The notes beneath the pieces were generated by a model that had not been told where the DNA came from, did not search any database, and saw only the letters and a list, made by a program, of their open reading frames with translations. From positions 3,348,001 to 3,412,000 of the forward strand of contig JBLDXI010000003.1 of assembly GCA_047495785.1 (NCBI GenBank): a stretch of DNA of 64,000 nt, read 5' to 3'. Position numbers and translations under genes: made by a program. Positions 10,326 to 43,000 of this stretch are shown here, piece after piece. Origin of the DNA: Lepidodermella squamata (taxonomy: Eukaryota; Animalia; Gastrotricha). Every line of letters begins with the position of its first letter. The first letter of the stretch is position 1.

Positions 10326-11335
10326 ATGGCTGAAAGTCCGAGAATTCTTGTCACGGGTAATTTCCATTTTTCTGCCTTTTATTTGCCGAATTTCTGGGTT
10401 ATTTTATTACAGGTGGGGCTGGTATGATTGGCAGCATGATAGTTCACAAATTGCGCGCTAAATACGGCAATGACAACGTGATTGCGGCCGACGTGCGTCG
10501 CGACACTGCGACACCGGTCGGCGAGCCGTTCGAACAGTGCGACATCACCGAGTTCGAGAGCCTCGAAAGCATCGTTGTCAAACACAAAATCACATGGCTC
10601 ATCAACGAATCCGCAATTCTTAGCCTCGCCTGTGAAATGAACCCGCAACTCGCGATGAAAGTCAATTTGATCGGCTTTCAAAACATCATGGAAGTTTCGA
10701 GGCTTCATAACCTACGCGTCTTCTCCGCATCGACCATCGCGTCATTCGGACCGTCGACCCCGAGGGTCATGGTCCCGGATATCACCATCCAACGCCCGCC
10801 TGGCCTATACGGCTCGACTAAGGTCCACAACGAATTAATCGGCGAATTTTACCACCGCAGATACGGCGTTGATTTCCGGTGTCTACGCTACCCGACCGTC
10901 ATCGCGCCTTCGGGTGAAGCCCGCGGCCGAGTTGTCGACTTTGCCGTTCAAATTTTCGACGAAGCCGTCAGCTCTGGTCACTACGTCTGCGACGTTGCCG
11001 AGTCGAGCAGCCTGCCCTTCCAGCTGGTCGACGATACCGTCGATGCGACAATTCAATTCATGGAGGCTCCGAATGAAAAATTAACCCTGCGAACGTACAA
11101 CATCACGGCATTCAGTTGCACAATCGGCGAGATTGCGGCTGCGATTAAGAAATTGATCCCGGAATATAAGGTGGAATTCAAGCCTAACCCAGCCAAGCAG
11201 CTGATTATCGACGGCATCCCTCAATCGCTGGACGACAGCCGGGCTCAGCGCGATTGGGGCTGGAAAGCTAGCTATGATATGGAAAAGACGGTCAAGGAGG
11301 TGATTCATCGTCTGAAATCAGCGCGAGCTAAATAA
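10326..11335 (+). CDS. TDH: L-threonine 3-dehydrogenase (extended SDR / NAD-dependent epimerase family); ~317 aa
   Basis: Exons 10326-10356 and 10413-11335 join to give the Rossmann motif ILVTGGAGMIG. Also VFSASTIASFGP, catalytic YGSTK, YGVDFRCLRYP and SLDDSRAQRDWGW, all typical of SDR-type TDH. An additional upstream exon is possible (acceptor near 10300, open frame). Confidence 0.85.
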
Positions 11336-15078: not shown

Positions 15079-15830
15079 TTATGCTCTCATTTTCAAATGA
15101 ATTTTTTCGGCCCGGTGAATGAGTTGTTGCCAAAGTTTTTCGTCAATCTTGATTTCGACTGAAGCCAAACTGTCCTCTTGACTTTCGGAGGAGTCGGGTC
15201 TGTCATTGCTGTTGGTTTGGGTATGATAAATCGCTGGCGAATTGATCACGTTCTCGCCCTGCCTTGACGATTTAAGCAGGAAGGAGTCAGCTTTTACGTG
15301 GGGATTAGCGTCCTCAATATCCGCGTCTGAATCGAAAAAAATGAATAATACATAAATTAATAAAAAAATATTTTTTTTCATGATTTCAACAAATTTCTAG
15401 TTCTCGGATTTTTTTTCATTCGCAAAAATTAAAGCGTGAAATTAACAGAAGTTGAAGGGGAAAATGAATTAAAAATGCTACTATAATTTAAAATCGAAAA
15501 TTACAAACGTTGATCTGGAGCCTTTTCATCGATAGTCATCTCCAGAAAGGTTTGGGGCAATGTCGTCAGATCGAATCCACGCGTCGGCTCGTTCGTTGTC
15601 GTTGATACTTCAGTGGTTGCTTCAGTGGTTGCTTCCGCTGTCGTCACTGTTGTATCGATTTTCTGTGTCGTAGTGACGAACCACCAGCGATTCCACTTCG
15701 GAGCACCATCAACAACAGAAATGGAAGCTAACATGGTCGTAAAAATATCAGCTGAGGGGCATCATTTTTCTTATAATTTACCGAGGCAAAATAGCATCGT
15801 GATGATTGTAAACTTCAAACAGGGTTTCAT
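15079..15830 (-). CDS. Secreted cluster gene A: signal peptide, KWNRWW peptide, Thr-rich acidic region; ~171 aa
   Basis: Exons 15830-15782, 15727-15509, 15326-15079. Spliced N-terminus MKPCLKFTIITMLFCLASISVVDG-APKWNRWW; length divisible by 3. Confidence 0.75.
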
Positions 15831-16235: not shown

Positions 16236-18035
16236 CTACGAGCAATCGGATGAGGCTGATTTGACAATGGGAATCTTCGGCTCATCCGACGCGCAGCTGA
16301 TTGAAGCTGTTTTCGCTTTGTTCTTAGCAGCAGGCTTGCGTTGTTTCGTGACTTTGTGACGCGGTTTTTCCGAGACAGCGCTGCTGCTGATGCTGTCGAA
16401 GTTAATTTCGGGATACGAATTGCTAACATCCTCAAGCGACTTGATGGAAGGAATTGTTTTGACGCGTTTTCTGATGCGCTGTTTAGTCGGACGGATTGAT
16501 TTAGCCTTAAAGGTCTTCCGTCGCCGGGCTCTTTTGTCTTCGATCGAAGATGTGGCTGATTTTGGCTGATGGACCCGATCCTTACGAGCCTTGCGAACTG
16601 TTTTTCGTGGAAACTTGGTCCGATTCACAGATGAAGCTCTCTTCCTTGGTTTCTTCCCCTCACGATCAGGCCGTTTAACTGAAACCGAATCAGATTTTTT
16701 GACTATCTTGCTCGGTTTCTTCCTGATGTGATCTTCGTTTGAGCTGAACCGCTGTTTGACCTTCAAATCTTTGCTGCCGTATTTTCGACGAATTTTCGGC
16801 GAGCTCGATTCAGACTTTTCAGATTTTGCCGCCGCTGAAGCCGAATCGGATATTTTGTCTTTCTTGCTTGGTATCTTCTTAATTTCATCTTCGATTGAGC
16901 TGAACCGCTGCTTGACCTTCAATTTTTTGCTGCCGGATTTTCGACGCATTTTAGGCAAGCTCGATTCAGATTTTTCCGATTTGTTGACAGCCAAAATTCG
17001 ACCTCTTCTCGAGCCCTTGATGTTACTATGAATTCTTCTACGAATAATTGGAGATCGGCGCTTCTTGATTTCAGGCGAAGCTGATGAGACAGAAGCCACT
17101 TTCACCGGCCTCTTCGTCTTAATCCGGCGGTTTTTCTTCTTCGGTCCAGATTTTTGCAAACGGATAGTTTTCCCCTTGAAGGGATCGACTTGAGCGATGT
17201 CAATTTCGGAAGTAACGGGAGCAACATCTTCGTTTTGCTTTGCGCTAGATTGAGCTAATGAGTTAAAAATTCCTCCTTAATAATTCGCATAAAAGGTCAC
17301 ATCAAATTTTATTACTTTCATCGTGTTGGTTCAGCCCGCTGACCTGAATTTGATTGCTTTGACCTATATTGACGTCTGTTTCGATCTGTTTGTTAAATTC
17401 ACCAGCTTCGGCCTTGTTTTCCACAAGATGATTGAATGAGTGAGGTGAGATGACTTCGATGTTCGTATCAAACACTGGATAAACTGGATCTGTTTGGTCC
17501 TTTTGTTTGGTGTTAGGTTGAGCTGGAGATGTGACACAGGGAAAAATGAAGTTCGAACTTTGAAAATTCTTTAAAAATTACCATCCTCAGCGTGGTCAGT
17601 TTTTTGAACCTCGCCATTATCCGTAACGAAGGCTTCAGCTCTCTGCTGCCCTTGCTCATCATTTGTATAAACATGCGTGATGGCAGCTTCGATGCCACCC
17701 GGCTGAGGTGGCGGTTCATTTGGACCATTTATTGGAATGTTGGAAATCGGTTGGTTTGTTGTAGGAGCGTTTTCGCCTTTATCGCCGTTTTTAGTATCTA
17801 GATTGTCGCCAGCAGTACCGGGAGATCGGCTGACTGGGCGAACATTCCACCAGCGATTCCATTTTGAAGCGACCCCGGCCTCAATCAAAGTCACTGAAAT
17901 ATTAAAAATTGAACATAATTATCTTTTTTTCCTACTGCACTTAAAAAAATGAAATTCGGATAATTTATGTTCAAATAACGAACCTGAGCATAAAATGGTA
18001 AAAATAACAAAAATTGTTTTAAAAAATGGTCGCAT
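16236..18035 (-). CDS. Secreted cluster gene B: signal peptide, KWNRWW peptide, acidic N-half, very Lys/Arg/Ser-rich C-half; ~529 aa
   Basis: Exons 18035-17984, 17893-17582, 17522-17316, 17254-16236, all introns phase 1. MRPFFKTIFVIFTILCSVTLIEA-GVASKWNRWW. Internal duplication KSEKSESS.PK.RRK.GSK.LKVKQRFSS.ED.I.K.PSK. Confidence 0.8.
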
Positions 18036-18699: not shown

Positions 18700-21600
18700 T
18701 CATTTGCCATGGGACAGCGGTTTGCAGACACCTGCAGCTGGCTTCTGCTTGACAAGAAGTTGAAGCAACAATTTCTTGCTGACTTTAGTTTTGACGTTGA
18801 CTTCCATTGAAACGAGTTGAGACTTATTACCAGGGCATGCGCGTTTGCTATCAGAGCTGCGGCTCGATTTTGGTTTCAACATGTGGCTGCGACTCCTGCA
18901 AAATAACAGGCTTTGAAGCAATAGTGAGCAAATAATCAAAAACATTACTTGTGTGGATGCTCCGAGCGACTACGTTTCGGCTTCGGTTTGGAGAGAGCAG
19001 AGCGACTCGGCTTCCTAGATAGCTTCCTCGTTGGCTTCGGGTGGCTGCCGCTCGAACCGTTGGGTTTGCCAGTAGGCTTCGGATGGCTGGCAGTCGAGCT
19101 GTTCGGTTTGCCAGTGGGCTTCGGCTTACGAGTAGGCTTCGGGTGGCTGGCAGTCGAGCTGTTCGGTTTGCCAGTGGGCTTCGGCTTACGAGTAGGCTTC
19201 GGGTGGCTGGCAGTCGAGCTATTCGGATTGCCAGTGGGCTTCGGCTTACGAGTCGGCTTCGGGTGGCTGGCAGTCGAGCTATTCGGATTGCCAGTGGGCT
19301 TCGGCTTACGAGTAGGCTTCGGGTGGCTGGCGGTCGAGCTATTCGGCTTACGAGTAGGCTTCGGTTGGCTGGCAGTCGAGCTGTTCGGTTTGCCAGTGGG
19401 CTTCGGCTTACGAGTAGGCTTCGGGTGGCTGCCGCTCGAACCGTTGGGTTTGCCAGTAGGCTTCGGATGGCTGGCAGACGAGCTATTCGGTTTGCCAGTG
19501 GGCTTCGGCTTACGAGTAGGCTTCGGGTGGCTGGCAGTCGAGCTATTCGGATTGCCAGTGGGCTTCGGCTTACGAGTCGGCTTCGGGTGGCTGGCAGTCG
19601 AGCTATTCGGATTGCCAGTGGGCTTCGGCTTACGAGTAGGCTTCGGGTGGCTGGCGGTCGAGCTATTCGGCTTACGAGTAGGCTTCGGTTGGCTGGCAGT
19701 CGAGCTGTTCGGTTTGCCAGTGGGCTTCGGCTTCCTCGTAGGCTTCGGGTGGCTGGCAGTCGAGCTATTCGGATTGCCAGTGGGCTTCGGCTTACGAGTA
19801 GGCTTCGGGTGGCTGGCAGTCGAGCTATTCGGATTGCCAGTGGGCTTCGGCTTACGAGTAGGCTTCGGGTGGCTGGCAGTCGAGCTGTTCGGTTTGCCAG
19901 TGGGCTTCGGCTTACGAGTAGGCTTCGGGTGGCTGGCAGTCGAGCTGTTCGGTTTGCCAGTGGGCTTCGGCTTACGAGTAGGCTTCGGGTGGCTGGCAGT
20001 CGAGCTGTTCGGTTTGCCAGTGGGCTTCGGCTTACGAGTAGGCTCCGGGTGGCTGGCAGTCGAGCTATTCGGATTGCCAGTGGGCTTCGGCTTACGAGTA
20101 GGCTTCGGGTGGCTGGCAGTCGAGCTATTCGGTTTGCCAGTGGGCTTCGGCTTACGAGTAGGCTTCGGGTGGCTGGCAGTCGAGCTGTTCGGTTTGCCAG
20201 TGGGCTTCGGCTTACGAGTAGGCTTCGGGTGGCTGGCAGTCGAGCTGTTCGGTTTGCCAGTGGGCTTCGGCTTACGAGTAGGCTTCGGGTGGCTGGCAGT
20301 CGAGCTATTCGGATTGCCAGTGGGCTTCGGCTTACGAGTCGGCTTCGGGTGGCTGGCAGTCGAGCTATTCGGATTGCCAGTGGGCTTCGGCTTACGAGTA
20401 GGCTTCGGGTGGCTGGCGGTCGAGCTATTCGGCTTACGAGTAGGCTTCGGTTGGCTGGCAGTCGAGCTGTTCGGTTTGCCAGTGGGCTTCGGCTTCCTCG
20501 TAGGCTTCGGGTGGCTGGCAGTCGAGCTATTCGGATTGCCAGTGGGCTTCGGCTTACGAGTAGGCTTCGGGTGGCTGGCAGTCGAGCTATTCGGATTGCC
20601 AGTGGGCTTCGGCTTACGAGTAGGCTTCGGGTGGCTGGCAGTCGAGCTGTTCGGTTTGCCAGTGGGCTTCGGCTTACGAGTAGGCTTCGGGTGGCTGGCA
20701 GTCGAGCTGTTCGGTTTGCCAGTGGGCTTCGGCTTACGAGTAGGCTTCGGGTGGCTGGCAGTCGAGCTGTTCGGTTTGCCAGTGGGCTTCGGCTTACGAG
20801 TAGGCTCCGGGTGGCTGGCAGTCGAGCTATTCGGATTGCCAGTGGGCTTCGGCTTACGAGTAGGCTTCGGGTGGCTGGCAGTCGAGCTATTCGGTTTGCC
20901 AGTGGGCTTCGGCTTACGAGTAGGCTTCGGGTGGCTGGCAGTCGAGCTGTTCGGTTTGCCAGTGGGCTTCGGCTTACGAGTAGGCTTCGGGTGGCTGGCA
21001 GTCGAGCTGTTCGGTTTGCCAGTGGGCTTCGGCTTACGAGTAGGCTTCGGGTGGCTGGCAGTCGAGCTGTTCGGTTTGCCAGTGGGCTTCGGCTTACGAG
21101 TAGGCTTCGGGTGGCTGGCAGTCGAGCTGTTCGGTTTGCCAGTGGGCTTCGGCTTACGAGTAGGCTTCGGGTGGCTGGCGGTCGAGCTATTCGGCTTACG
21201 AGTAGGCTTCGGTTGGCTGGCAGTCGAGCTGTTCGGTTTGCCAGTGGGCTTCGGCTTACGAGTAGGCTTCGGGTGGCTGGCAGTCGAGCTGTTCGGTTTG
21301 CCAGTGGGCTTCGGCTTACGAGTAGGCTTCGGGTGGCTGGCAGTCGAGCTGTTCGGTTTGCCAGTGGGCTTCGGCTTCCGAGTCGGCTTTGGATGGCTAA
21401 CAGCCGAGCTATTCGGATTGCCAGTGGGCTTCGGCTTACGAGTAGGCTTCGGGTGGCTGGCAGTCGAGCTGTTCGGTTTGCCAGTGGGCTTCGGCTTACG
21501 AGTCGGCTTTGGATGGCTGCCGCTCGAACCGTTGGGTTTGCCAGTAGGCTTCGGATGGCTGGCAGACGAGCTATTCGGTTTGCCAGTGGGCTTCGGCTTC

Positions 21601-24600
21601 CTCGTAGGCTTCGGATGGCTGGCAGTCGAGCTGTTCGGTTTGCCAGTGGGCTTCGGCTTACGAGTAGGCTTCGGGTGGCTGGCAGTCGAGCTGTTCGGTT
21701 TGCCAGTGGGCTTCGGCTTACGAGTAGGCTTCGGGTGGCTGGCAGTCGAGCTATTCGGATTGCCAGTGGGCTTCGGCTTACGAGTAGGCTTCGGGTGGCT
21801 GGCAGTCGAGCTATTCGGATTGCCAGTGGGCTTCGGCTTACGAGTAGGCTTCGGGTGGCTGGCAGTCGAGCTGTTCGGTTTGCCAGTGGGCTTCGGCTTA
21901 CGAGTAGGCTCCGGGTGGCTGGCAGTCGAGCTATTCGGATTGCCAGTGGGCTTCGGCTTACGAGTAGGCTTCGGGTGGCTGGCAGTCGAGCTATTCGGAT
22001 TGCCAGTGGGCTTCGGCTTACGAGTAGGCTTCGGGTGGCTGGCAGTCGAGCTGTTCGGTTTGCCAGTGGGCTTCGGCTTACGAGTAGGCTTCGGGTGGCT
22101 GGCAGTCGAGCTGTTCGGTTTGCCAGTGGGCTTCGGCTTACGAGTAGGCTTCGGGTGGCTGGCAGTCGAGCTGTTCGGTTTGCCAGTGGGCTTCGGCTTA
22201 CGAGTAGGCTTCGGGTGGCTGGCAGTCGAGCTGTTCGGTTTGCCAGTGGGCTTCGGCTTACGAGTATGCTTCGGGTGGCTGGCGGTCGAGCTATTCGGCT
22301 TACGAGTAGGCTTCGGTTGGCTGGCAGTCGAGCTGTTCGGTTTGCCAGTGGGCTTCGGCTTACGAGTAGGCTTCGGGTGGCTGGCAGTCGAGCTGTTCGG
22401 TTTGCCAGTGGGCTTCGGCTTACGAGTAGGCTTCGGGTGGCTGGCAGTCGAGCTGTTCGGTTTGCCAGTGGGCTTCGGCTTCCGAGTCGGCTTTGGATGG
22501 CTAACAGCCGAGCTATTCGGATTGCCAGTGGGCTTCGGCTTACGAGTAGGCTTCGGGTGGCTGGCAGTCGAGCTGTTCGGTTTGCCAGTGGGCTTCGGCT
22601 TACGAGTCGGCTTTGGATGGCTGCCGCTCGAACCGTTGGGTTTGCCAGTAGGCTTCGGATGGCTGGCAGACGAGCTATTCGGTTTGCCAGTGGGCTTCGG
22701 CTTCCTCGTAGGCTTCGGATGGCTGGCAGTCGAGCTGTTCGGTTTGCCAGTGGGCTTCGGCTTACGAGTAGGCTTCGGGTGGCTGGCAGTCGAGCTGTTC
22801 GGTTTGCCAGTGGGCTTCGGCTTACGAGTAGGCTTCGGGTGGCTGGCAGTCGAGCTATTCGGATTGCCAGTGGGCTTCGGCTTACGAGTAGGCTTCGGAT
22901 GGCTGGCAGACGAGCTGTTGGGTTTGCCAGTAGGCTTCGGATGGCTGGCAGACGAGCGATTCGGTTTGCCAGTGGGCTTCGGCTTACGAGTAGGCTTCGG
23001 GTGGCTGGCAGTCGAGCTGTTCGGATTGCCGATGGGCTTATGCTTCGAATCCCCATCAGAATGATAAGGTGGCGATTTCCGAGTCGGCTTCGGAGGTCTA
23101 GCTGTCCAGCTATCCGTCGTCGAGTGACTTTCAGGCGAGTCAATTTGCGGCTTTCGAATATGCTTCTGATGGCTAGCAGTTGCGCTCTTTGGTCTCTTCC
23201 TTGCCTTCGGTTTACTAACAGCCGAGCTACCCGGCTTGTCAGTGGGCTTTGGCGTCTTCGTCGGCTTCAGTAGGCTAGCCGTCGAGCTATTCGGTTTGCC
23301 AGTGGGCTTCGGCTTCCTGGTCGGGTTCCGATGGCTAACAGCCGAGCTATTCGGCTTGCTAGTAGGCTTCGGCCGACTCGTGGGCTTCGGATTGCTAGCA
23401 GTCGAAGTATTCGGCTTCTTGGATGGCTTAGGTTTGCTAGTTGTCGACCGAATAGGCTTGTGTGTTGATTTCCGTTTTCCGGCAGTCGAACGAGTCGGCT
23501 TGTAAGTTGGCATCGGATTGCTAGCACTGGAACGAGTGATCTCGCGAATGAGATGCGGATGGCTCCATGCCAAATCCCTACATCGCCATACATCGCATAA
23601 TGTTAATGTTCATCAAAATGTTCTTCTATATTTCTAAAATTCTTATAAACGACTTCATGGTTAACGAATTCATGTCGAAACAATTTTCTTGCAGTAGTTC
23701 TTGATTACATTATCAGTCTAATGATGCTAATAATCTTACGCCATATTTTGGGAATCACTCCCACTAATCATCTCCCCGATATTCCCATTAGACTGCTTAG
23801 GTTCTGACGACACGCCTGGAACTCGCGTCGGTTTATCACCGCCATCCTCTTGTCGTTTGTGCGGCTTTGTGATTGCTGGTATCGTCGTAGCAACCTCTTC
23901 GTTTTGTGGCTTGTGAGTCGTTGCAGTCGGATTTTCTTGTTGAGATACAGTGCACGTTGTTGCTTCGACTTCGTTTTGTTGCGTCACCGGTTTGGTAACC
24001 TCTTCGTTCTCATTCATGTTCTTCGCGCGCTTTGTCGATTCACCAACATCGCGCGGCTTTCCAGACTTGCCACCTTGAAAATCAATAAATGCCAAAAATT
24101 CAGATTAAATCAAAACATTTAGAAAAAGTTAAGCAATATACTGATAAATTTTGACATCAACGCACAAATAATAAGGAATTGAATTTTAAATAATCAGAAA
24201 ACTCACTTTCAGATAAAATTGTCTTCGCTTTGGCTTCATCTTTTTCTGTTGGGTTATCGCGTTGCGTCTTCAGACTGGTGACGGCATTTTTCTTCGACTT
24301 TTCCGCTCGCATAGCCCCGGGCGACTCTGGTGGCGGGACAGGTTCATCCCCTTCGGCGGCAGCAAAATCGCACCAAGCTATATTGAAAAAGATGTTTCAT
24401 TTACATTTCTCTCATGAAAACATTTTATGGGACTTGAAAATGTGCGTGAAAAAAATGTACGCTAAATTTGGTTATAAATTGGGACGTAGTAAATTTGGAC
24501 AACTCGCAAGTGTGAAAATAATCATCTCATTTTGAAAAAATTCTGCGCGTTTCAATAAAATTGTGCATATCATAATGCGTGCCCAAAATTACACCCCGAT

Positions 24601-25874: not shown

Positions 25875-26528
25875 CCGTGGTGTGGGGTAACTTGGCCGGA
25901 AATATGGTATTTTGAACCTATTACGTCTCCGGTATCTTGCTTCGCTTTATAAATTTGATACCAAAAAATCTCCGTTCAATTTTCAATCGATTGTTCAAAA
26001 CCCGGTCGACGACCGATAAAATCAATCGATTCTGTGGAGGTTGAAGTGATCTTGACCAAGTGGGATAACTTGGCCGTATGGCTATCTCATGCATTTCAGG
26101 CAGAAACTAGGCATCTGGCAGAAACTAGGGCGATGATTCATCACGCCCTCTCATGTCTAGGTCAAATTGTATTGCGCATTTCGCAGGTTAAAAATCGGCC
26201 AAGTTACCCCACAAAATTCAGGTAATTACCGCTCGCGATTGCGACATCAGTTTTCAGGGGGTCATTTGAAAGATATCACCGAGGGGAATCTTTCTGTGAA
26301 ATCCCAGAATTCCTTATAATTAATGCTCAAAATCTCAGCGCCTAAAATGAACGAGTTGGTACTGACCTTCCTTGTCATTTAAAAAACGATTTTCGAATTC
26401 GGTAAACAGGGAGTTGTAGCTCAGATGGCAAGCAATGTTCCTGTGAAAGAAATTTCGTGAAAATGGTTTTTCTCGATGTGATATCGACCAGAAGGCGACT
26501 TTTACGGCCAAGTTACCCCACGCCACGG
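25875..26528. mobile_element. Non-autonomous Tc1/mariner/pogo-type DNA transposon (654 bp)
   Basis: TA target duplication on both sides. 24-bp TIRs CCGTGGYGTGGGGTAACTTGGCCG with one mismatch. Internal copies of the TIR core near 26060 and 26196. Confidence 0.85.
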
Positions 26529-26825
26529 TATTACATAGTTTTGGATTTCCGTCGCCGTGTTTGAAAAAAATCAAAGCCTGAAAAACGTGAAGTTTTATTG
26601 TTATGACAAAAGGTAAATATTTTGTTCAAGTTTCATGCAAATAAAATGATCAATCATTTGTTGTTTTTTGAATGTCACACAGTTTGTTATTGTCTTTGAA
26701 ATAAAGAAAATTCCGCAGTTTCAGGTTAAATAAAATTATAATAAAATCATCTGTATAGTATCAACATGTCGATTTTCATCGGTAAAACGAGTAAAATACA
26801 AGTTCATGTGTCATTTATCTCCGGG

Positions 26826-29800
26826 TTATTTATACGAATTTCCGGCAGGTCGCAGGCCGTTTCGCCTCTTCAGTGAGCAAGTGGCGCTGTTGCTTTTAGA
26901 GCCATGCCTGTGGTTACGGTTGTTCAGTTCCTCCTCGCGCATCGTGTTGAGCTTCGTGAAAATTTTCAGTACATTCAGACCAGCCCGCTTGCGAATGGGC
27001 GACGAGCTCGACTTCGATGAGCAGCGACGACGGCGCGACGACGATGACCTAGATTTAATCCTCAGTCGCGACAGTGACCTACTTTTCTTAACACGAGGGC
27101 ACTTCCACGGCTTGCGTGATGACGAGCTGCTTTTTCTACCCGAGCGGCCGCGACCTCGACTGCGCGAGCTTCGGCTGACTTTCACCGGAGGACACCCGCC
27201 GCCGCCACCCTGGTTGTTGCTCTTGCTGCCCTTCGGTTTGCTGCGGCTCCTGCTCTTCCGGCTGCGGCTTCGGCGACACGGCCGGCTACGGCTTGGTTTC
27301 TTCGCACACAGGCGCTTCAAACGGTCCTTGTTCACCTTGGTTTTGATTGTTTTGATTTCGAGGGTGAACGACTTGCCGCCGAAGCGAGTTCGCCGGTATT
27401 TAGGTGGCAACTTCCCGCCGCTGCTATTGCGAGCCTTCGAACAAGGAGATTTCGGCCCGGATCGGGATCTTGATCGCCTAGAAAAATCAAATAATTAAAT
27501 TTTAATTTTAATCAATTTCAAAATTTAATTAAAATGAAAGAAAAATTAAATCATTAAACAATTTAATTTTAATTTTTAATGATTAAAAAATTCCAAAGTA
27601 TTGGAACAAAGATTGGAATGAAAAAAAATACCTAGGTTTATGACCCGAATCTGGCTTGGAACCGAAAATCGGATTCGAGCTGGACTTTCCAGGCTTGCTG
27701 TTGGACTTGGACTTGCAGTTGCCGCGCGGCCGGTTGTTTTCGTGGCTCTTGCACGTCTTGTGGGGATTCTCCTTGCTCCGACTACGGCACCTCCAGGGTT
27801 TGCTGTTCGATTTCGATCGCGATTTGCTCTTGGATGGCCTATTATTTTCGTGGCTCTTGCAGGTCTTGTGCGGATTCCAAGGCTTTCGAGGCCTGCTGTT
27901 GGACTTGGATTTCGACTTGGAAGGCCGGTTGTTCTCATGACTCTTGCAAGTCTTATGAGGATTCCAGGGCTTCCAAGGTTTGCTGTTAGACCTTGACTTG
28001 GATTTGCTCTTAGGCGGCCGGTTGTTCTCGTGACTCTTGCAAGATTTGTGAGGATTCCAAGGCTTTCGAGGCCTACTGTTAGACTTCGATTTCGACTTGC
28101 TCTTGGGCGGACGGTTATTCTCGTGGCTCTTGCAAGACTTGTGAGGATTCCAGGGCTTCCAGGGCTTGCTGTTCGACCTCGATTTCGAATTGGACTTGCT
28201 CTTGGGCGGCCGATTATTTTCATGACTCTTGCAAGATTTGTGAGGGTTCCAAGGCTTCCAGGGCTTGCTGTTAGACCTCGACTTGGATTTGCTCTTCGGC
28301 GGCCGGTTGTTCTCGTGGCTCTTGCAAGTTTTATGAGGATTCCAGGGCTTCCAAGGCTTGCTGTTCGAGTTCGATTTGCTTTTGCGGGGTCGATTTCTTT
28401 CGTGGCTCTTGCACGTCTTGTGACGATCTTCCCTGCTCTTCGACTTGGAATTGCTTCTGCTGTTGCTAGGCAGATTCGGCCACGGGAAACCGTGTTTGCG
28501 ACGAAGGCCTTCGTGACTGCCACATCCCCTGTGCCTATCCTCTTTGCTACCACTCCGCTTCGGGAACTTCGGGAATGGCCAGCCAAACTTCCAACGGTCC
28601 AGCTCATGGCTCCGGCACGACTTGTGGCCTCCTCCCGGAGGGTTACCTGCAAAACATTAAGATCTCAATTAACTAGATTGAATACCGAATAGCCTAGAAT
28701 GGAGATAAAAATTGGGCTATTTAAAGGTGAGAAAACAGTTTGCAATTGTTATTTTTTCCTTAAAAATGAGTTAAATGAGTCTGAAAAACGAACTCGGAGG
28801 TGGCGGTGGAGGTGGCGGGGCAGGAGTTGGTGGCTTGTTCCGATCATGCTCGTGGCTCTTGCAAGACTCATGGGGATTCACTACGAAAAAAGTTCAATTT
28901 TAATAACTGCGATAAAAAATAAATAAAAAGGCCGCCGCCTTAAAGCGAGCGAAAAATTCGGCGAAATACATTTTCATTTTCGAACTCTAATATTGGAAGC
29001 AAGGATATAGAAACCATAATGACGTTGCTTGAACTTGCCGTTTAGGCAAAATTCCTCAAAATTCATAATTGAGTTTATAATGCTAAAAACCAGAGAAATT
29101 TTACCTGGCGGCGGAGGCGGAGGTGGCGGCTTCGGAGCAGGCGCAGGCGGCTTGTTTCGCTCCCACTCGTGGCTCTTGCACGAATCGTGGCGATTCACTA
29201 AACAAAGAAAACCAGTTATTAATTACACCAATCATCTATCTTCAAATTAAGAAATACCAATTTATGAATGATAAATATTTTACCTGGTGGAGGCGGAGGT
29301 GGCGGTGGGCTTGGCGGCTTCCGTTGCCACTCGTGGCTCCTACAGGTGTCGTGATTAACTTCAACAAAACAATTTCAATTCAATTTGTCAGAGAACGATA
29401 AAAAAATCGAGGAATTACCTGGTGGCGGAGGTGGTGGGCTAGGAGGACTGGGAGCGGGCGCGGGTGGCTTTCGCTGCCACTCGTGGCTCCTACACGTGTC
29501 GTGATTTACTTGATAAAAAATGATCAAATCGTCAGAATATGTTAAAAAAAATAAAAAATAAAAAGGAATTACCTGGTGGCGGAGGTGGTGGGCTCGGAGG
29601 GCTTGGAGCAGGTGCGGGTGGCTTTCGCTGCCATTCGTGGCTCCTGCAAGTGTCGTGATTTACTAGATAAAAAAGGTTTAAATTACATATTTCAATCAGA
29701 CTCTAAGTGAAAAGTAAAAGAAATTGAGATTTTACCTGGTGGCGGAGGTGGTGGACTCGGAGGACTGGGAGCAGGTGCAGGTGGCTTTCGCTGCCATTCG

Positions 29801-30875
29801 TGGCTCCTACACGTGTCGTGATTTACTTAACAAAAATAATTTCAATTATCAATCAACAATTTTCAAGAAATTAGAATGAGCATTTACCTGGGGGTGGAGC
29901 CGGCCGAGGAGCAGGCGCTGGCTGAGGTGCGGGCGCTGGCGGCTTTCGCTGCCACTCGTGGCTCCTACACGTGTCATGATTCACTGAAATAATTAAAATA
30001 AAAAATAAATTATCCTAAAAATAATATCAATAATAAATGCCAATCTCAATAATATCCCGTGTTTTCGCCATTAATTTGAAATATCCCAAAAATCCCTGAA
30101 AAATAACAAAAACCCCCGACAATACCCTGAACTTTGACCTCGGAAGGGTCTGACATTTTTTGAGCTTGTTGGACATTTTTCAGGGCTTTTTACCATCATT
30201 TTTCAAGGTTGTTTTAGGATATTTCAAATGAATAGCAGCAACACCCGGATTTGTGTTCGGGATTTTTACCAGGTGGTGGTGGCGGCGGGGGTGGAGGCGC
30301 GGGTGCCGGGGGCTTGTTTCGCTGCGATTCGTGGCTCCTACATGTGTCGTGGCGATTCCCTGAAATGAGCCAGTAAATTACGATAAAATAATATTCAGGT
30401 AAATTGTTTACCTTCTCTGCTCCTGGAGCCGCGACCAGCTACAACAATTTCAACAAATCAATCAATTTCTCCACTAATTTAGCGATCTTACATGTTGGCG
30501 ATTGAGGACGACCGCCTAGAAAGCCGAATCGCGATTCAACCAAAGTAGGCGGCTGATCTTCTCCCAAATCGACAGCAGCATCTTCTTCAGGCGGGTTATC
30601 TCCTGGTTGAGCCGGTTGTTGAGTCGTAGGCGGCACTGGTGGTTGGGTTGTTTGTTGAATTGGTGCCGGATTTTCGACAACGTCACGCCGATTTCGCATA
30701 GCAACAGCTCTGTTGCGCCATTTATTCCATCTAGGCTTATTGTTTGGACCAGCGCCATCGCTCATCGCTATATCGAAAAAATCGAGTTAAGACCCATTTT
30801 ATCTCAAAGGTAAAAAAAATACACACCGACAAGGCTGATGATGGTCACCAGGGTGACCACAAGACTGCTCCGCAT
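26826..30875 (-). CDS. Secreted cluster gene D: 13-exon protein with 18 H-x-x-C-x-x-H-E repeats, poly-Pro linkers and an Arg/Lys/Ser-rich tail; ~909 aa
   Basis: Exons 30875-30827, 30767-30492, 30438-30412, 30359-30270, 29983-29888, 29825-29736, 29662-29573, 29508-29419, 29358-29284, 29197-29105, 28880-28794, 28646-27632, 27477-26826; total 2,730 nt. Signal peptide MRSSLVVTLVTIISLVAMSDG, then PRWNKWRNR and a furin-like RNRR site. The true frame of the 1-kb exon (NPHKTCKSHENNRPPKSKSKSRSNSKPWKPW repeats) is absent from the ORF track. Confidence 0.85.
28794..30359 (-). repeat. Array of eight duplicated phase-1/phase-1 mini-exons (75-96 bp), each encoding NHDTCRSHEWQRK-like + poly-Pro
   Basis: Each block is bounded by AG and GT, has a length that is a multiple of 3, and the exons are near-identical while the intervening introns are divergent and AT-rich. 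Confidence 0.9.
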
Positions 30876-30976
30876 GGTAAAACTTGTCGGACAATGATTA
30901 AAATGTAGATGAGTATAAAAAGGATAAAATAAAGTAAAATGAATAAAAAAAATTACAATTCAATATTGCTGGCGAC

Positions 30977-31031
30977 TTTTATAAACATGCGTGACCGGCA
31001 CGCGATGTTACAACTACGGTGCGCACACGCG
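30977..31031 (-). promoter_or_regulatory. Putative promoter of gene D: TATA box plus two CACGCG sites
   Basis: TTTTATAAA at 30977-30985 (TATAAAA on the minus strand) about 100 bp upstream of the ATG; GGCACGCGA at 30997-31005; CACGCG at 31026-31031. Similar motif pairs lie upstream of the other six cluster genes. Confidence 0.5.
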
Positions 31032-33335
31032 CCCGTTACGCAATATTAACAGAAGTAATAAACACCAGGCTGGAACAGTAGGCTCATCTTAAAAAAAACT
31101 CGTGTTCGTCTGCGCAAATATGTCACCTTCCAACAAATTTGTCTCGAAAGAGGTCACTTGTAATCTCAAAGTTATGTCTCATAAATCATCAATCTGATCT
31201 AAATAAATTTTCAGGCAACATGTAGTTTTTATCGGCCCTGAAGAATTTATGACCAAATCTCGGCATTTTATTTCTTGAAAAGTCTGAAATTCCCAGGTTC
31301 GATTCGTGATGGCCGATCATCGTTTTTTGTAGATTTTTTCCAATTTCCATGATATGCCAAGACGTTGGAAGATTTACCTAAAATCGCGTGCTTCAACCCA
31401 GGTAACAATAGCGATATTGTGGATACGTTAGTTCTACGGAGATAGCTTCGATAATTTTCGAATCTTGTAACAGGCAAGGCTACTAAAAATTGACAGAAAT
31501 TTCCCGGCATTCAAACAAATATACCGAGGCCAATTTGCTACAAGAAATATTATTAAGGATAGTTGGAAAACGGCTTCAATCGCTTGGATTCTATAGAAGC
31601 CTACACAGGGAATCGATTCCGCAAATATGCAATAGTTTCTAGGGCCTGTATTGGGCTAAAATCTATAGTTGTTAAAAGGTGGGTTCCGATCAACTATATA
31701 TTATCAGAAATGGGCCGACCTTGGGCCCATTGACTTCCTGCCTTGAGACGAAGGCCTGCCTAACATAGGCCCAAGGGTTTTTGACTATGGGATTTATTCG
31801 AAACTGGAAGCTAGGCATGATTTTAAAACTGAACTTTGAAATTGTTCTTCGAAATAAAAAGCGATCGGCGGAATTTTCTCATACTCCAGAGGTCGACACT
31901 ATACCGTCTGATCGACAAAGTATTGCATAAATCTGAGTAACGTATTTTTTCGAATAAGGGACGCATCCGATTGATCACCGCAAATATTTAGCTTTTTGCC
32001 GGAGAAAATTAGCGACAAAAAGGTCGGACCTGAATAAATAGCGGGCAACAGAAGAAAGATTTTAACAAATTTGAAATTCGAAGCAATAATGAAAATCCAA
32101 GGTTGAACAAAAATACTGAAAAAAACTTAGATAATTTAGTGTCAATGGACGTGCGATAGTGAGCTGAAAGTAGGACGACGCAGCAAAAGCTTGTTAGTGG
32201 CTTCGAAGTGTGATCATTATTTCGTAGGGGTGCGCAACAGGCTGTCCCATGAAGAGAATATTTTTTGGGAAAATTATTTAAAGCGTTTTTACTGAATCCG
32301 GAGCATGCTTTTCTGCGCGCCCGTTACGTTCAAGTCCGTGAACAATAAGTGTAACGAGTAGAAAAATGGCGGCAAAATCTGATGAAATTATTGATTACAA
32401 GATTGACTGCAAATTATGAACGGGATTCCATAAAATGTGACGTGATTTCGGAAATCAACGTGTAACGGGGTTTAAGGCTGCTCGGATGAATCTTAACACA
32501 CCTTGCACCACATGCGTTAGTATTCCGGTTAGTCTTATAGCAGCCTTATTATATTCTGGTAACTGAGACTATCACGTAAATCACGGTAAATTAACTTTTA
32601 CCAGGCGCAGTTGATCGCGATAAACTGATGTTTTTAATGCCGGACAAAACTGGATTAATTAAGGTGCGTGAATATTTAAATGAGGGTCATGGGTCATAGC
32701 TCATTTTTGAGTGCAAAATGAAAGAAATAAAGAAAAACCAAAAAGGTTGTGCAATTCGAACTCTCGATACTGAATCTAGCTCTTAATGCATTACTACAAA
32801 GGCAACGATTTTCAATAATCTGAAAGTTTATCGGCATCTCTGTATGTCTGACCGAAGTTACCGAGGACAATTGTTATTCATGCGGAAATTTGCCGGTTGA
32901 AATTTTTCCAACTACCCCACTGCAGTTGTCCAATTATGATCAACTGGTTATTCTCGAGGAAAACAGCTTATTATGATTCAAAGCGATGAGATTCTGGAGA
33001 AAAGTGAACTTCGAATCGTTTCCAGCTACCTATAAACTTTTCACTCAAGATCGAAAACGACATCGAAACAACATATTGATATATCGATAAAATGTATTTT
33101 TATTATTGCATTTGTATTTATCAAGTCGTTTGCAAATAACGGCAATATATACCACGGTGATACGAAGGATAAAATTTTAAAATATTATAATATCAAGAAA
33201 AAAAGATAATTTTTTTATTGCTGGCAAAATAATTTTAGCGCAATAATGATTTGACATGTTTTGCATGAGTTTTAGCAGTTATAATGTGTCGCCAGAGATA
33301 AATATTCTGTATGATTCAACGTGCTTAGGAATAGG

Positions 33336-34864
<1,529 letters not shown>

Positions 34865-38281: not shown

Positions 38282-39061
38282 CTAATTGTCCTGAACGCCG
38301 ATGATTGGGCGTTTTTTATCAGCGCCAGTGAGCTTGCCAACTTTTTGGAAAATTTTCAGCAAATTACGCCTCGCCTTCTTTTTCACCTGCTTCGACGCAC
38401 TTCCCGACACGCTATCAGTGATTCTCGGGACTGCAGTTGTAGTCGCCTTCTTCGAACTATGCGAGTGACGCTTCTTTCCAAGTCGACGTGATGGCTTTTG
38501 ACTTTGAGCTTTGATGTGGCGCTTATGCCGGTCGCGCCGTGATTTCGAACAGCTTGAATAAGATCGCCTGAGCCGCTCGACCTTTGCGCGTTTCAGCTTC
38601 GGATAACGCCGTCTCGGCCTCATAACTACAACATAGCTCCAATCCATGCTAGATTCGTACTCTGAAAAAATCATAATTAATTGAGGAAAATATTTAAATA
38701 ATTATAAATTTATTAATTAATTAAATTTTAAAAATTTCAATGAAATTTATTAAAAAATTGAATTTTAAAATTAAAAAAAATTGTCTAACTTGAGCTGCAA
38801 CTTGGCTTCTTGACAACGCGGTCTTTTTTGCACGACCTTGACTTCGACTTGGATTTGCCGCAATTTTTATTATTGGCGCCGCACGGCGGAGGAACGTAGG
38901 CCGAGGCAGACGCTGAATTGGACTCTGAAGGCAATTTAACGTTGAACATCGGCTTGACGCGCGGATCCTTTGGCTTTTGTTGCTGCTGCTGTTGAGGTGG
39001 TCTCGGTGGAGCGACTTGAGGTGGTTGTTGTTGCTGCTGTTGTTGCTGTTGCTGTTGCTGC

Positions 39062-39093
<32 letters not shown>

Positions 39094-39529
39094 TTGTTGA
39101 GGAGGTTTCGGTGGCGCGACTGGATTTTGCGGTGGCACCTGTTGTTGAGCAGGTTGCACTGGCGCAGGTTTATTAGTATCAGCCGCTCCGTTTTGAGGCT
39201 TCAACTCAACTATTGGGACTACCATCTCAGTGATCTCAGTCGGCTCATCACTTTCACTTTCAGACAGCTCGTTGGGATCTATAATTGTCGGTATCTCAAG
39301 ATTCAGAGGCTTCAGGTTAATACTGAGATCGTCGCCAGTTTGAATAACCGGCCGAGCTGCTGATGGAATTACTACGGGCGGCGCGGTGACATTGGTTGGA
39401 TTTTGACTCGATACTGAACATTTAAAAAAAAAAATCGTAAAATTTCAAGCTGCCTACAAGCTATTTATCATGAAATTTACCTGAACAGAATGCAGTTAAG
39501 AGACCGGCTAAAATAACATGACGTATCAT
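38282..39529 (-). CDS. Secreted cluster gene G: paralog of gene E (poly-Gln, Lys/Arg/Ser tail); ~350 aa
   Basis: Exons 39529-39481, 39413-38790, 38661-38282. MIRHVILAGLLTAFCSVSS. Shares QQQPPQVAPPRPPQQQ and KKARRNLLKIFQKVG...RPIIGVQD with gene E. Confidence 0.8.
38978..39098 (-). repeat. Poly-glutamine (CAG/CAA) tract in gene G
   Basis: (TGC/TGT)n on the plus strand. Confidence 0.9.
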
Positions 39530-40036: not shown

Positions 40037-43000
40037 TTATTCCATCATGTAGCCTTTACTCTGCAAAACAATCATAACATTTCGTTTCTGAGCAGCTTTC
40101 GCCCTTGCAAACGGCGTCCTGCCGTGTTTGTTCTTCGCTGTCGCCAAATCAGGGTGCTTATCAATCAAATAAGCCACAACGGCGGCTTGCCCGAAATAGG
40201 CAGCCAAGTGAATAGCCGTCGAGCCGGTCTCTGTATCCCGCACATAGACATCGGCCCCTCGCTCACGTAAAAATTCGACAATAGGCAGATGACCCCAAGC
40301 GGCGGCCATCATTAAAGGCGTTCGACCTAGTTCACCGCGATTTTCTATGTTTGCGTACTTGCGATCGACCAAAAACTGGGTCAAGAAGAAACGACCACGT
40401 GTAGCAGCTCGGTTCAACGCGGTGTCATTATTTTTGTTCTTTGCTTCTATCAAATCAGGTCGATGTTCGAGTAGCGCGGCTACGACATCATAATGCCCAT
40501 AGGCTGCGGCTAAATGAATAGGCATCGACTCCAGTTCGTGGCTATCCTTAGCGTAGACATTAGCATTGCACTCTTTGATGAGAAATTGAACGATTTGAAG
40601 GAAGCCGCGCATAGCGGCGTGTAGTAGAGGGGTGTTTCGGAAGTTGGAAATCTGACGGCTTTCGACGAGGAGAGGTCGACAGCCGGGCGGTATCGATTTG
40701 TTGAATAAGATCGTTTTAACTGTGCTCAAATCACCGATTCGAACTGCGTGATGCAGCCGCTCAGCTTCGATTGGTAGCTGAAAATTTTGAAAATGGAATA
40801 ATCGATTATTAAAATTGGTTCGATCTGTCCAACAATATTTTTGAGTGATATAATTCCCAGATCTAAGACTTTCCAAGCTTGTATCGGACTCCGCCTCATC
40901 GAATTTCATAACTCTGGGAAAACGGATTCGAAAAATAAGGCAATTGAATTCCTAGATTACCATAAATACCAAATTATTAGGCATTTTTTCCGTGGGATTT
41001 CAAGGGAAAATCGAAATCATCAAGAAAAACAGGTTCAGGTTTCACAATCATTCAAATTCATTCGAAAAAATTCGCAAAACCCCCTTTTCTCTTGCTAAAC
41101 GTCTATAGGTAAATTAAAAATAAAATGTGCAAAATGTAGGCAGAAAAAAATTAAAATTGAATTATTTACGAGGAAAATATTATTAAGGAGGAATTTTCAA
41201 TTACAAGAAACGTTACATAGCTTTTTTATATAGAATAAAAAAAATAAAAAAATACCCTTTCCCGTCGCCATAAATCGACTTGTATACTCCTTTTCCACGT
41301 AAATATCGACTCCTGGACTTCGCGACGTGGAAACAGCAGCCGAATATCGGACTCCGTTTTCAAAGCCAGTTCATCCGAAGTGAGACCATACTCTAAGGAA
41401 AATTTCATGTCAAACTCAGATCTCTCAGTTTACTAAAAAAAAATTACTTTGAATGACTTCACAAATCTCATCCTTTAAACTCTCCGGGATTATTTTCGAA
41501 TTTTTTATCGAATCCAGGCCGTGGTCCTTAATTACAAGAATTTGAAAAAATCTGAGACAAAATTCGATTATTACCTTTCCAGCTTTATTCGCGCGAAGAA
41601 GTGAAAGACTTCGAGGTGAATTCATCATGGCAGCTGCCGATAATTCCGAATCAAGACTTCTACTCGCAACATTCTCTCTAATACATTCCATTGCACTTGC
41701 CGTCGACAATGTCGGAGTCTTCCGCATCGGCTCAGTGGAGGGCGGTCTAGAATCCGCCGCTTCCGTCCAACTGTCCTTTTTCATCGGCGCCATTTCAGAA
41801 ATAACAGATTTCACCGAAACCGCCAGTTCGTTACCACTGAAATCAGCGCCTTTTTGAATGCCGACCACTGTGAAAGTCAACGGGTCTAGAATCGGCAAAC
41901 CGGCTAGAGACGATATTTTATGCTTGAAATACCCGTCATTCGACAACTGATTCACCTCCCCGACAACGCAAATCGGCTGTTTCGACCCGATTTTCGTTTG
42001 AAGAGCCATGATTTTCTGCCGTTCATTCAACTTGCCCTGGTGAAGTTCGAGGAATTCCAGTTTTTTGTAATTTATATACTCGGCAGCTTCGCGCGGCAGT
42101 TCGAAAAACGACACGCCTAATTTTTTGCAATAAATCCATCGAATGAACGGAATTTCCAGCGGCTTCTCGGCGCGGAAACTCGCCTCGAAATGAACGAGTA
42201 AATTCAGCGATTTCTTCGTCCGCTGTCCCATTGTGAATGACGAGAGGGTCATGAGGCCGAATCGCAGCTGGCTATGAGTCACCGGTAGTGCGAATAAAAA
42301 GCCGTAGCAGTCGAACCCGCCCGGGTCTTTCACCTTGCAAATCGATTGCGAGATATGCGGGCCTTTACTCAGGGTGGGTAGAACAAGGCCGGATAGAGCT
42401 TGTTGCTTCACGGGTTGGTTGCTGTTCCGCTTGTCGTAGACGAGCAGTTGTTGCATCATTTTGTTGTGCTTTGCCTCAGTGCCGGCGGTTTCACCACGAG
42501 AATTCCAGCCAGTTCCTGGTAGCTCGATGTAGTTTGAGCGGCGAAGTAGCGATTGGCTAGGGGTCTTCCTTTCATCAGTCTTTGGTGTAGTAGTACGGTG
42601 GGAAGGGTCGGCGGGGGCGGCAGTGGGCCCAGAGCTGGAGGCTGATTTGACCTTGGCTGTTGGGCTGACGGTGTTGGTTGAACTGGCGGAAAACGAGTTG
42701 TGAACAAAGAGTCCGGAAGTTTTGCGGCTATTAGCGCTGGTTTTGTCCGAAGAGGCTGGTGAAGGTACGAAGAATGAGGCTTGGCGGTAATAGTGGCCTG
42801 TTGTGGCGGTCGAGGCGACGTTATTTTCGTCAATGAAGCCACTGAAAAATTAATTGAAAAATTATTTTAAATGTCTCAAAAACTCGGTCAATTACCTGCT
42901 AGATTTAGAGCGAAAATATATTATGTTATTCATCTTAAAAAGCTGTACTCAATCTATATGGCTAAAAGCGTCCGATGCCTGTCCTATCGCTATGAAAATT

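Follow-up and report, generated by a model that had tools for sequence, protein, structure and literature searches.

A predicted secreted protein of the gastrotrich Lepidodermella squamata with eighteen copies of a conserved H-x-x-C-x-S-H-E-x-x-R motif

The present analysis concerns a stretch of 64,000 nucleotides from the genome of the gastrotrich Lepidodermella squamata (assembly GCA_047495785.1, contig JBLDXI010000003.1, positions 3,348,001 to 3,412,000 of the forward strand; hereafter 'the window'), and in particular a minus-strand gene, designated gene D, which occupies positions 26826-30875 of this window. Gene D comprises 13 exons with a combined coding length of 909 codons, and it encodes 18 copies of a short motif, here called the bead, in which six residues are identical in every copy while their codons vary synonymously. 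Its predicted product appears to be exported, and no described protein family containing the bead was found.

The bead motif and its copies

A six-frame scan of the 64-kb window returned exactly 18 occurrences of H..C..HE, all on the minus strand between positions 27739 and 30351, and none elsewhere in the window. An earlier examination of the same DNA (hereafter the sequence-only reading) had reported 18 H-x-x-C-x-x-H-E copies within 27632-30359, a count that is reproduced here, and these coordinates run exactly from the 3' end of a large exon to the 5' end of the first motif-bearing mini-exon. Its division of the copies, i.e., eight in mini-exons that continue into poly-Pro and ten in a 1-kb exon, was likewise recovered in both the scan and the translation. 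The mini-exon motifs are HDTCRSHE (six copies), HDSCKSHE and HESCKSHE, each followed by 15-22 mostly Pro residues, and those of the 1,015-nt exon (the 'big exon') are HKSCRSHE, HRGCGSHE, HKTCKSHE (five copies) and HKSCKSHE (three copies), with spacers that mostly read [SK]n-KPWKPWNP. A degenerate DNA pattern for three consecutive motifs matched five times in the window, as opposed to zero times in 100 shuffles.

Codon-by-codon alignment of the copies defined the conserved unit as H-x-x-C-x-S-H-E-x-x-R, 11 residues long, with H0, C3, S5, H6, E7 and R10 each present in 18/18 copies. The H, C, S, H and E that had been described earlier as fixed are indeed invariant, but that list was incomplete, as R10 is equally so. 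The fixed positions employ two to four synonymous codons each (H0, CAC/CAT; C3, TGT/TGC; S5, AGC/AGT; H6, CAC/CAT; E7, GAA/GAG; R10, CGA/CGG/CGT/AGG), representing at least eight independent synonymous codon states and zero replacements across the 18 copies. Among the variable positions, a charged residue (D/E/K/R) occupies position 1 in all copies, T or S position 2 and K or R position 4, apart from a single G at each of the latter two. The distance from one motif start to the next is 26-37 residues, mostly 29-33, over poly-Pro rods and Ser/Lys linkers alike, and the motif is retained across three unrelated linker chemistries. The motifs account for 36 of 39 His residues and 18 of 20 Cys residues in the repeat region.

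Transcription, reading frame and haplotypes

Splicing was assessed using Logan contigs of four public sequencing runs placed on positions 26300-31200, among which run X1 represents DNA and runs X2 and X3 are RNA-derived. Spliced contigs from X2 and X3 exhibit CT..AC joints (minus-strand GT..AG) at eight of the 12 predicted introns, and the four introns for which no joint is listed are all found where the mini-exons are most repetitive and the contigs are interrupted. All 12 introns are of the GT-AG type and 52-286 nt long, every mini-exon is a multiple of three in length with phase 1-1, and no exon-skipping joint is present among those listed for the gene. The joint 27632/27477 is new relative to the sequence-only reading and adds 217 codons to the gene. 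Gene D is, in short, transcribed and spliced as modelled.

The frame that encodes the motif is the only one to remain open through all gene D exons, extending over 909 codons from the first ATG versus 414 and 59 codons in the other frames, and the splice phases join it across all exons. It is indeed missed by the program-made list of open reading frames (ORFs), as had been remarked earlier; that list instead gives a different stop-free minus-strand frame at 27576-28652 (358 aa), which spans the big exon. Sequence differences between haplotypes or strains and the window were evaluated for the 40 best-supported of 69 single-base differences, of which 33 are coding, and 30 of these 33 listed differences are synonymous and three nonsynonymous. 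Of all possible single-base changes in the gene D coding sequence, 23% are synonymous, and even at an assumed 30% a ratio of 30:3 has P ~4e-13. In the big exon, the synonymous to nonsynonymous ratio is 18:3 in the motif frame as opposed to 4:17 in the rival stop-free frame, and the latter ratio, together with the splice phase, rules out the rival ORF. Regarding the possibility, raised at the outset, that cDNA might reveal another reading frame, the spliced contigs, the splice phases and the 18:3 versus 4:17 ratios all favour the motif frame, which is thus securely the coding frame of gene D.

The repeat array is polymorphic in length. An in-frame repeat unit of 102 nt (34 aa; 28055-28156, minus strand), whose loss removes one motif, is delimited by a non-intron TT..GC joint that occurs at approximately half depth in run X1 and is also present in X2 and X3. 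This unit, which includes the motif at 28120-28143, is absent from one haplotype in DNA run X1 and from the X2 and X3 transcripts, such that the motif copy number segregates at 17 or 18. Many single-nucleotide polymorphisms linked to the indel are also found at about half depth. The half-depth indel and its linked polymorphisms suggest that the sequenced animal is heterozygous and carries two diverged gene D haplotypes.

Selection on the bead

Among the mini-exon units, DNA identity amounts to 85-98% in the motif, 57-92% in the linker and 50-76% in the introns, with mini-exons 6-8 being 91-93% identical to each other. The motif is the most constrained part of these units and, since the introns have diverged while the motif DNA has been kept, the duplications are not recent enough to make this conservation trivial. 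The earlier proposal that the motif is under selection is in agreement with two observations, namely the synonymous-only variation at the fixed residues and the elevated identity of motif DNA relative to that of linkers and introns, and purifying selection on the six bead residues is accordingly supported.

Searches for relatives

When head, ten-motif exon and tail of the gene D protein were searched against Pfam-A with hmmscan, no family was obtained at E <= 0.01, and an ESM-Atlas feature search gave a best score of 0.80, which is at noise level. A word-indexed protein search with the big exon as query returned no match, its 8,000 candidates probably having been swamped by low-complexity words. 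An exhaustive phmmer (HMMER) search of 1.84 billion representative proteins returned a single match, a protein of 1,591 aa (P0001). This protein resembles a NACHT-LRR (NLR) protein of fish in its sequence features and its Ser/Pro/Met repeat is unrelated, so the match was judged spurious. As a self-hit was absent from the HMMER results, the library does not contain this organism, and the blank result therefore means 'no described family' and says little about other gastrotrichs.

At the DNA level, the degenerate three-motif pattern matched 92 loci in JGI metagenome contigs. All of these proved to be stop-ridden non-coding repeats based on TG.ATGAGTCAYGAR-like words, and none of the 92 encodes a basic H..C.SHE repeat protein. 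The strings HDTCRSHE and HKTCKSHE were not encountered in literature full text, where 5-mers matched only words such as 'backsheet' and 'rockshelter'. The view that the motif belongs to no known family is consistent with the Pfam, ESM-Atlas and HMMER results, and on the basis of these searches gene D is considered a lineage-restricted orphan.

Features of the encoded protein

The gene D product is 909 aa long (~100 kDa, pI ~11.5) and is rich in Pro (18%), Ser (16%), Lys (12%) and Arg (11%), with Lys and Arg together accounting for 23% of its residues. Residues 1-17, MRSSLVVTLVTIISLVA, are encoded by an exon of their own that ends in phase 1, and include one basic residue ahead of a stretch of 13 that are hydrophobic or small; judged by eye, they are supported as a signal peptide, in which case the product would be exported. 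The export that the sequence-only reading had presumed for the motif protein is corroborated by the in-phase splicing of this signal-peptide-like exon and by an exon design that is common to two neighbouring paralogues (see below). The head (residues 18-117) is non-repetitive and includes PRWNKW, an RNRR site and the acidic patch EEDAAVDLGED. The eight mini-exons encode residues 118-354, each contributing [VN]-motif-[QRK] and then 15-22 mostly Pro residues, and the big exon encodes residues 355-692 (net charge +78), comprising ten units of ~31 aa of the form NPHK[TS]CKSHENNRPP-[SK]n-KPWKPW. The tail (residues 693-909; net charge +67) is rich in Ser, Arg and Lys, and contains seven isolated Cys residues and a conserved, predicted amphipathic helix, IRKRAGLNVLKIFTKLNTM.

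AlphaFold2 (AF2) models made without an alignment assign the big exon a mean predicted local distance difference test (pLDDT) value of 42.7 and no secondary structure, and the tail one moderately confident helix (exon residues 161-188, pLDDT up to ~79); the gene D protein is accordingly predicted to be intrinsically disordered. In a hypothetical helical bead, an arc of 120 degrees would contain H0, C3, H6, E7 and R10, with S5 opposite, a statement of geometry only, as no helix is predicted there. The earlier image of beads on a rigid linker holds for the eight mini-exons with poly-Pro but not for the other ten linkers, which are flexible, polycationic and composed of Ser, Lys and Trp. Of note, W-x-x-W, the C-mannosylation consensus for Trp residues of secreted proteins, occurs four times in the KPWKPW linkers of the repeats (residues 453-582, encoded within 27632-28646) and five times in the protein as a whole, and these linkers are therefore possible C-mannosylation sites.

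Exon structure of gene D

All exons of gene D are located on the minus strand. Exon 1 (30827-30875) contains the start codon, with the ATG at 30875, encodes the signal peptide MRSSLVVTLVTIISLV and ends in a phase 1 donor (joint 30767/30827, run X3). The 5' end of the mRNA lies at or beyond 30937 and the covered 5' untranslated region (UTR) is devoid of upstream ATGs. A spliced leader was considered for a 40-nt loose end in run X2 and rejected, this end being an allelic, diverged form of the 5' UTR in the genome. Exon 2 (30492-30767; joints 30438/30492 and 30767/30827) encodes the non-repetitive N-terminal region, including PRWNKW, RNRR, the acidic EEDAAVDLGED and GGRPQSP, and is followed by exon 3 (30412-30438; 27 nt, phase 1-1), which specifies SGRGSRSRE and is bounded by joints 30358/30411 (+1) and 30438/30492 in runs X2 and X3.

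The eight motif-bearing mini-exons commence with mini-exon 4 (30270-30359; 90 nt, phase 1-1, GT-AG borders), which encodes GNRHDTCRSHESQRNK followed by poly-Pro. Mini-exon 5 (29888-29983; 96 nt; joint 29825/29888) encodes VNHDTCRSHEWQRK and PAPAPQPAPAPRPAPPP, and mini-exon 6 (29736-29825; 90 nt) the same motif as mini-exon 5 with poly-Pro, the latter assignment being based on joint 29825/29888, GT-AG borders and phase. Mini-exons 7 (29573-29662) and 8 (29419-29508), both 90 nt, were placed by GT-AG borders, phase 1-1 and RNA-contig depth, their own joints being unlisted at the point in the repeat where contigs break. Mini-exon 9 (29284-29358; 75 nt) is supported by joint 29197/29284, and mini-exon 10 (29105-29197; 93 nt), encoding VNRHDSCKSHEWERNK and poly-Pro, by joints 28880/29105 and 29197/29284. 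Mini-exon 11 (28794-28880; 87 nt), which encodes VNPHESCKSHEHDRNK and poly-Pro, possesses an unusual, weak donor, A|GTTCGT, and the joint 28644/28792 (+2) in run X2 indicates that this donor is in use. The big exon (27632-28646; 1,015 nt, phase 1 in and phase 2 out) is defined by joints, translation and tandem periods of 93 nt and 192 nt, and carries ten motifs. The last coding exon (26826-27477; joint 27476/27631 (+1), runs X2 and X3) encodes the Ser/Arg/Lys-rich tail and terminates in the stop codon at 26826-26828. It is followed by a 3' UTR (26580-26825) with AATAAA at 26594-26599, RNA-derived contigs ending at 26580-26617.

Two segments stand out in the summed contig depth of DNA run X1, namely 30072-30235 in intron 4 of gene D (~530) and 26300-26630 just 3' of the gene (~1,800-2,200), with flanks at ~50-60 in both cases. 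These segments look like high-copy interspersed repeats, the former being situated inside an unusually long intron of 286 nt.

Neighbouring genes and other features of the window

Gene D belongs to a series of minus-strand genes whose products are secreted proteins of low complexity. Judging from shared organization, at least two of its neighbours, genes E and F, are paralogous to it and form a local family with it, the three genes having in common a phase-1 signal-peptide exon of 49-52 nt, a basic Ser/Arg/Lys/Cys-rich region and a C-terminal module. Gene E (33339-34863, minus strand, predicted splicing) has a 52-nt phase-1 signal-peptide exon, MRFALARIAVAAAIFSF, followed by an acidic DLGND..GRPQNP segment, poly-Gln, an Arg/Ser/Cys-rich region and the module KKAGRNLVRILKKVG. 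Gene F (38302-39529, minus strand, predicted splicing) combines a 49-nt phase-1 signal-peptide exon, MIRHVILAGLLTAFCS, with poly-Gln, a Lys/Ser/Cys-rich region and the module KKKARRNLLKIFQKVG. The module, [KR]K[RK]A[GR].N[LV][LV][KR]I[FL].K[LV], closes all three genes and corresponds to the predicted helix in the gene D product. Exon 2 of gene D is weakly similar to the N-termini of neighbouring genes, and gene E contains one degenerate bead-like element, GHAPRCSKNRPP. Two further genes of the cluster (minus strand, 15570-15737 and 17697-17864) encode KWNRW, as part of KWNRWW, directly after a hydrophobic N-terminus, past the presumed cleavage site, comparable to PRWNKW in gene D, and these elements may represent a shared mature N-terminus or a sorting signal of a wider secreted family.

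The window averages ~43% GC and contains several other features. A minus-strand ORF of 1,542 codons rich in Pro, Thr and Lys (18945-23573) consists of ~20-aa units with periods of 60 nt and 180 nt and a GC content of up to 61%; it has no Pfam match and looks mucin-like, and the same 4 kb are open in several further frames on both strands. Two paralogous single-exon ORFs on the minus strand (41425-42459 and 56508-57581; 344 and 357 aa) also lack a Pfam match. The former reached an ESM-Atlas feature score of 0.95 against Trypsin_2-type peptidase clusters, and both may be divergent trypsin-fold proteins. An apparently intron-less L-threonine-dehydrogenase (TDH)-like gene is located on the plus strand at 10424-11335. 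Its best relative is 66% identical (loci L093 and L094), as compared to at most 47% for named animal TDHs, and is encoded on densely packed ENA metagenome contigs next to another gene of the epimerase family and one with a cyclase domain; synteny with this relative was dismissed, the metagenome contig being unrelated, and the origin of the TDH-like gene may deserve a look. The plus strand furthermore harbours an apparently intact non-LTR (long terminal repeat) retrotransposon at 49541-54018, in which a 530-aa ORF1 overlaps a 965-aa ORF2 with endonuclease and reverse transcriptase. Exact look-ups of eight window ORFs and an ankyrin ORF found none on record, and an Rfam scan of the window returned no match.

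Possible function of gene D and alternative explanations

Gastrotrichs possess duo-gland adhesive tubes, a scaled cuticle and eggshells that harden. Our preferred reading, to which we assign slightly less than an even chance, is that gene D encodes a scaffold of an extracellular material, be it adhesive-gland secretion, cuticle/scale matrix or eggshell, with the beads acting as the curing points of that material. The first eight beads are set apart by stiff poly-Pro rods, with one bead and one rod per symmetric mini-exon, and the last ten by flexible cationic Ser/Lys/Trp-rich linkers, which could bind polyanions or surfaces. Flanked by His and Lys/Arg, the bead thiol is expected to have a lowered pKa and hence to be more reactive, and in combination with the His/His/Glu set it might allow intermolecular disulfides and shared Zn/Cu/Ni sites, singly or together. 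That the bead binds metal or forms disulfide cross-links is plausible given this arrangement of residues. A more specific proposal, that the bead represents an undescribed autonomous Zn/Cu/Ni or metal-plus-thiol switch module whose ~31-residue spacing would serve metal- or redox-triggered curing of a gastrotrich secretion, is regarded as rather unlikely.

Several observations weigh against the scaffold reading or its chemistry. Each bead presents one Cys, two His and a Glu at i, i+3, i+6 and i+7, which falls short of four Cys/His ligands and, within eight residues, does not correspond to a recognized zinc-site signature; a complete zinc site would consequently need the Glu as ligand or the participation of two beads. 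No curated metal-binding or zinc-finger profile in Pfam-A (C2H2, CCHC knuckle, metallothionein etc.) matches gene D, and the AF2 models provide no fold from which ligand geometry in the ten-motif exon might be read. Neither the invariant Ser of S-H-E nor R10 has an obvious role in a simple metal/disulfide model. Gene conversion between repeats, i.e., concerted evolution, could inflate the apparent conservation, although the synonymous-only pattern would not result from it. Finally, no orthologue outside this species complex was found in protein libraries that lack a self-hit, and the transcript evidence consists of contigs that carry no tissue information.

The invariant Ser (18/18, AGC/AGT), left unexplained by a pure His/Cys ligand model, is the starting point for a different interpretation, in which the bead would be a short linear motif recognized by an enzyme or partner, for example a Fam20C-type kinase, or an oxidase or protease that docks there and matures the material, instead of a cross-link. 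S-x-E is the consensus of Fam20C-type (Golgi casein-kinase-type) kinases of the secretory pathway, which the gene D protein is predicted to enter; all 18 beads contain S-H-E, bead serines make up 18 of the 22 S-x-E sites of the protein, and disorder is the usual setting of linear motifs. Phosphorylation would yield 18 phosphoserine-His-Glu sites. An S-x-E site needs just two fixed residues, however, as opposed to the six that are fixed in the bead, and no kinase or partner was identified within the window; we consider such a recognition role improbable, though deserving of mention. The regular ~31-residue units, with a conserved core and a variable spacer, could also be taken to indicate a polyprotein precursor that is cut into ~30-residue cationic His/Pro-rich peptides of an antimicrobial or metal-sequestering (apidaecin/histatin-like) nature, with the bead as active core. 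The layout of the protein, with its signal peptide, acidic head and strongly cationic body, would suit such a precursor, as would a repeat number that varies between 17 and 18, as in multi-peptide precursors. Yet the units are not bordered by conserved dibasic or furin-type sites, the only R-x-[KR]-R matches being those at residues 41, 745 and 841. It is atypical for spacers to consist of 15-20-residue poly-Pro rods or a tail of 217 aa, and the spacers of gene D change almost only synonymously between haplotypes, from which it follows that they appear to be constrained as well; this explanation is held to be distinctly unlikely.

A further alternative is a polycation that would condense polyanions, in the manner of protamine P2 or silaffins, and pack nucleic acid, acidic glycans or mineral in a granule or gamete. 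Body and tail have a combined net charge of ~+155, SR/SK-rich runs and isolated Cys residues, the paralogues share Arg/Ser/Cys-rich regions, and the succession of signal peptide, acidic head and basic repeats resembles that of silaffin precursors. The signal peptide, by contrast, speaks against a role in nuclear chromatin, Pfam and HMMER searches detected no sequence similarity to protamines or silaffins, and the Pro rods have no obvious role in condensation, and we place little faith in this alternative also. There is, lastly, the notion that the motif has no function and that its 18 copies are young and have been homogenized by unequal crossing-over or gene conversion within a gene of low complexity. 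Tandem periods of 93, 154 and 192 nt, the segregating 102-nt unit, which indicates ongoing unequal exchange, and the 91-93% identity of mini-exons 6-8 are all to be expected under it. It is disfavoured by the contrast between intron identity (50-76%) and motif DNA identity (85-98%) among mini-exon units, by the retention of the motif between repeat classes with dissimilar linkers, by the six positions that vary synonymously with zero replacements, and by the 30:3 synonymous excess among the listed haplotype differences, and we attach hardly any credence to it.

Comparison with known secreted materials

Gene D resembles the periodic cross-link proteins of secreted materials in kind and not by homology. 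The Balbiani-ring proteins (the spI family of Chironomus salivary glands) are large, secreted, basic proteins of tandem units that are cross-linked into an underwater thread. The likeness resides in a short Cys-bearing constant part that alternates with Pro/Lys/Ser-rich sub-repeats. Their units contain four Cys and no His pair, whereas the gene D unit has one Cys, two His, Ser, Glu and Arg in addition to its poly-Pro mini-exons, and no similarity to these proteins was detected in the Pfam and HMMER searches. Cnidarian minicollagens are secreted proteins with poly-Pro beside short Cys units that switch to intermolecular disulfides during hardening; they possess a six-Cys cysteine-rich domain (CxxxCxxxCxxxCxxxCC) flanking a Gly-X-Y core, whereas each bead of gene D contains a single Cys and its 909-aa translation is free of Gly-X-Y runs. 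The flanks of mussel byssus preCols, mfp-4 and the Nereis jaw protein Nvjp-1 belong to extracellular structural proteins in which repeated short His motifs bind Zn or Cu and harden or toughen the material. These domains are rich in His, Gly and Ala, with many His per motif, and lack the invariant Cys-x-Ser-His-Glu of gene D; Pfam and HMMER revealed no homology to them, and the metal sites of gene D are putative. Protamine P2, an Arg/Ser-rich polycation whose Cys and His residues bind zinc and form intermolecular disulfides, is nuclear, small and devoid of a signal peptide, in contrast to the 909-aa gene D product with its predicted signal peptide.

The closest precedent from a related phylum is compositional and is provided by Mlig-ap1, a secreted protein that functions in temporary adhesion of the flatworm Macrostomum lignano and in which positively charged Lys/Arg low-complexity 'GRK' regions ('SRK' in M. 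pusillum) account for two-thirds of the protein (PMC8621496). The SKSKSRS and RSRSRK runs of gene D are of the same compositional kind, and large Lys/Arg-rich low-complexity regions in a putatively secreted protein are thus a feature that gene D shares with the flatworm adhesive proteins, although the likeness is one of composition only. The core of Mlig-ap1 contains C-type lectin, vWD, C8, TIL and EGF domains, and flatworm ap1 and ap2 proteins in general carry vWD-C8-TIL, C-type lectin, EGF or TSP-1 domains (PMC8621496). None of these is present in gene D, which lacks any Pfam domain, and a His-Cys bead has not been reported for Mlig-ap1.

Significance

A literature search found no described molecular component of the adhesive tubes, cuticle or eggshell of gastrotrichs. 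If the bead were indeed a metal- or redox-responsive element, gene D would be the first molecular component known for any gastrotrich extracellular material (adhesive, cuticle or eggshell), and its interest would rise further if it proved to mark the adhesive glands. The bead is placed on two very different linker types, and synthetic peptides such as NPHKTCKSHENNRPP and VNHDTCRSHEWQRKPP would allow its properties to be tested directly. As a cross-link node, it would constitute a new minimal motif beside the His-metal bonds of mussels, the disulfides of minicollagens and the Balbiani-ring proteins, and might be usable in designed materials. Should it not be such a node, gene D would still represent a clean case of strong purifying selection on a disordered orphan protein, spacers included.

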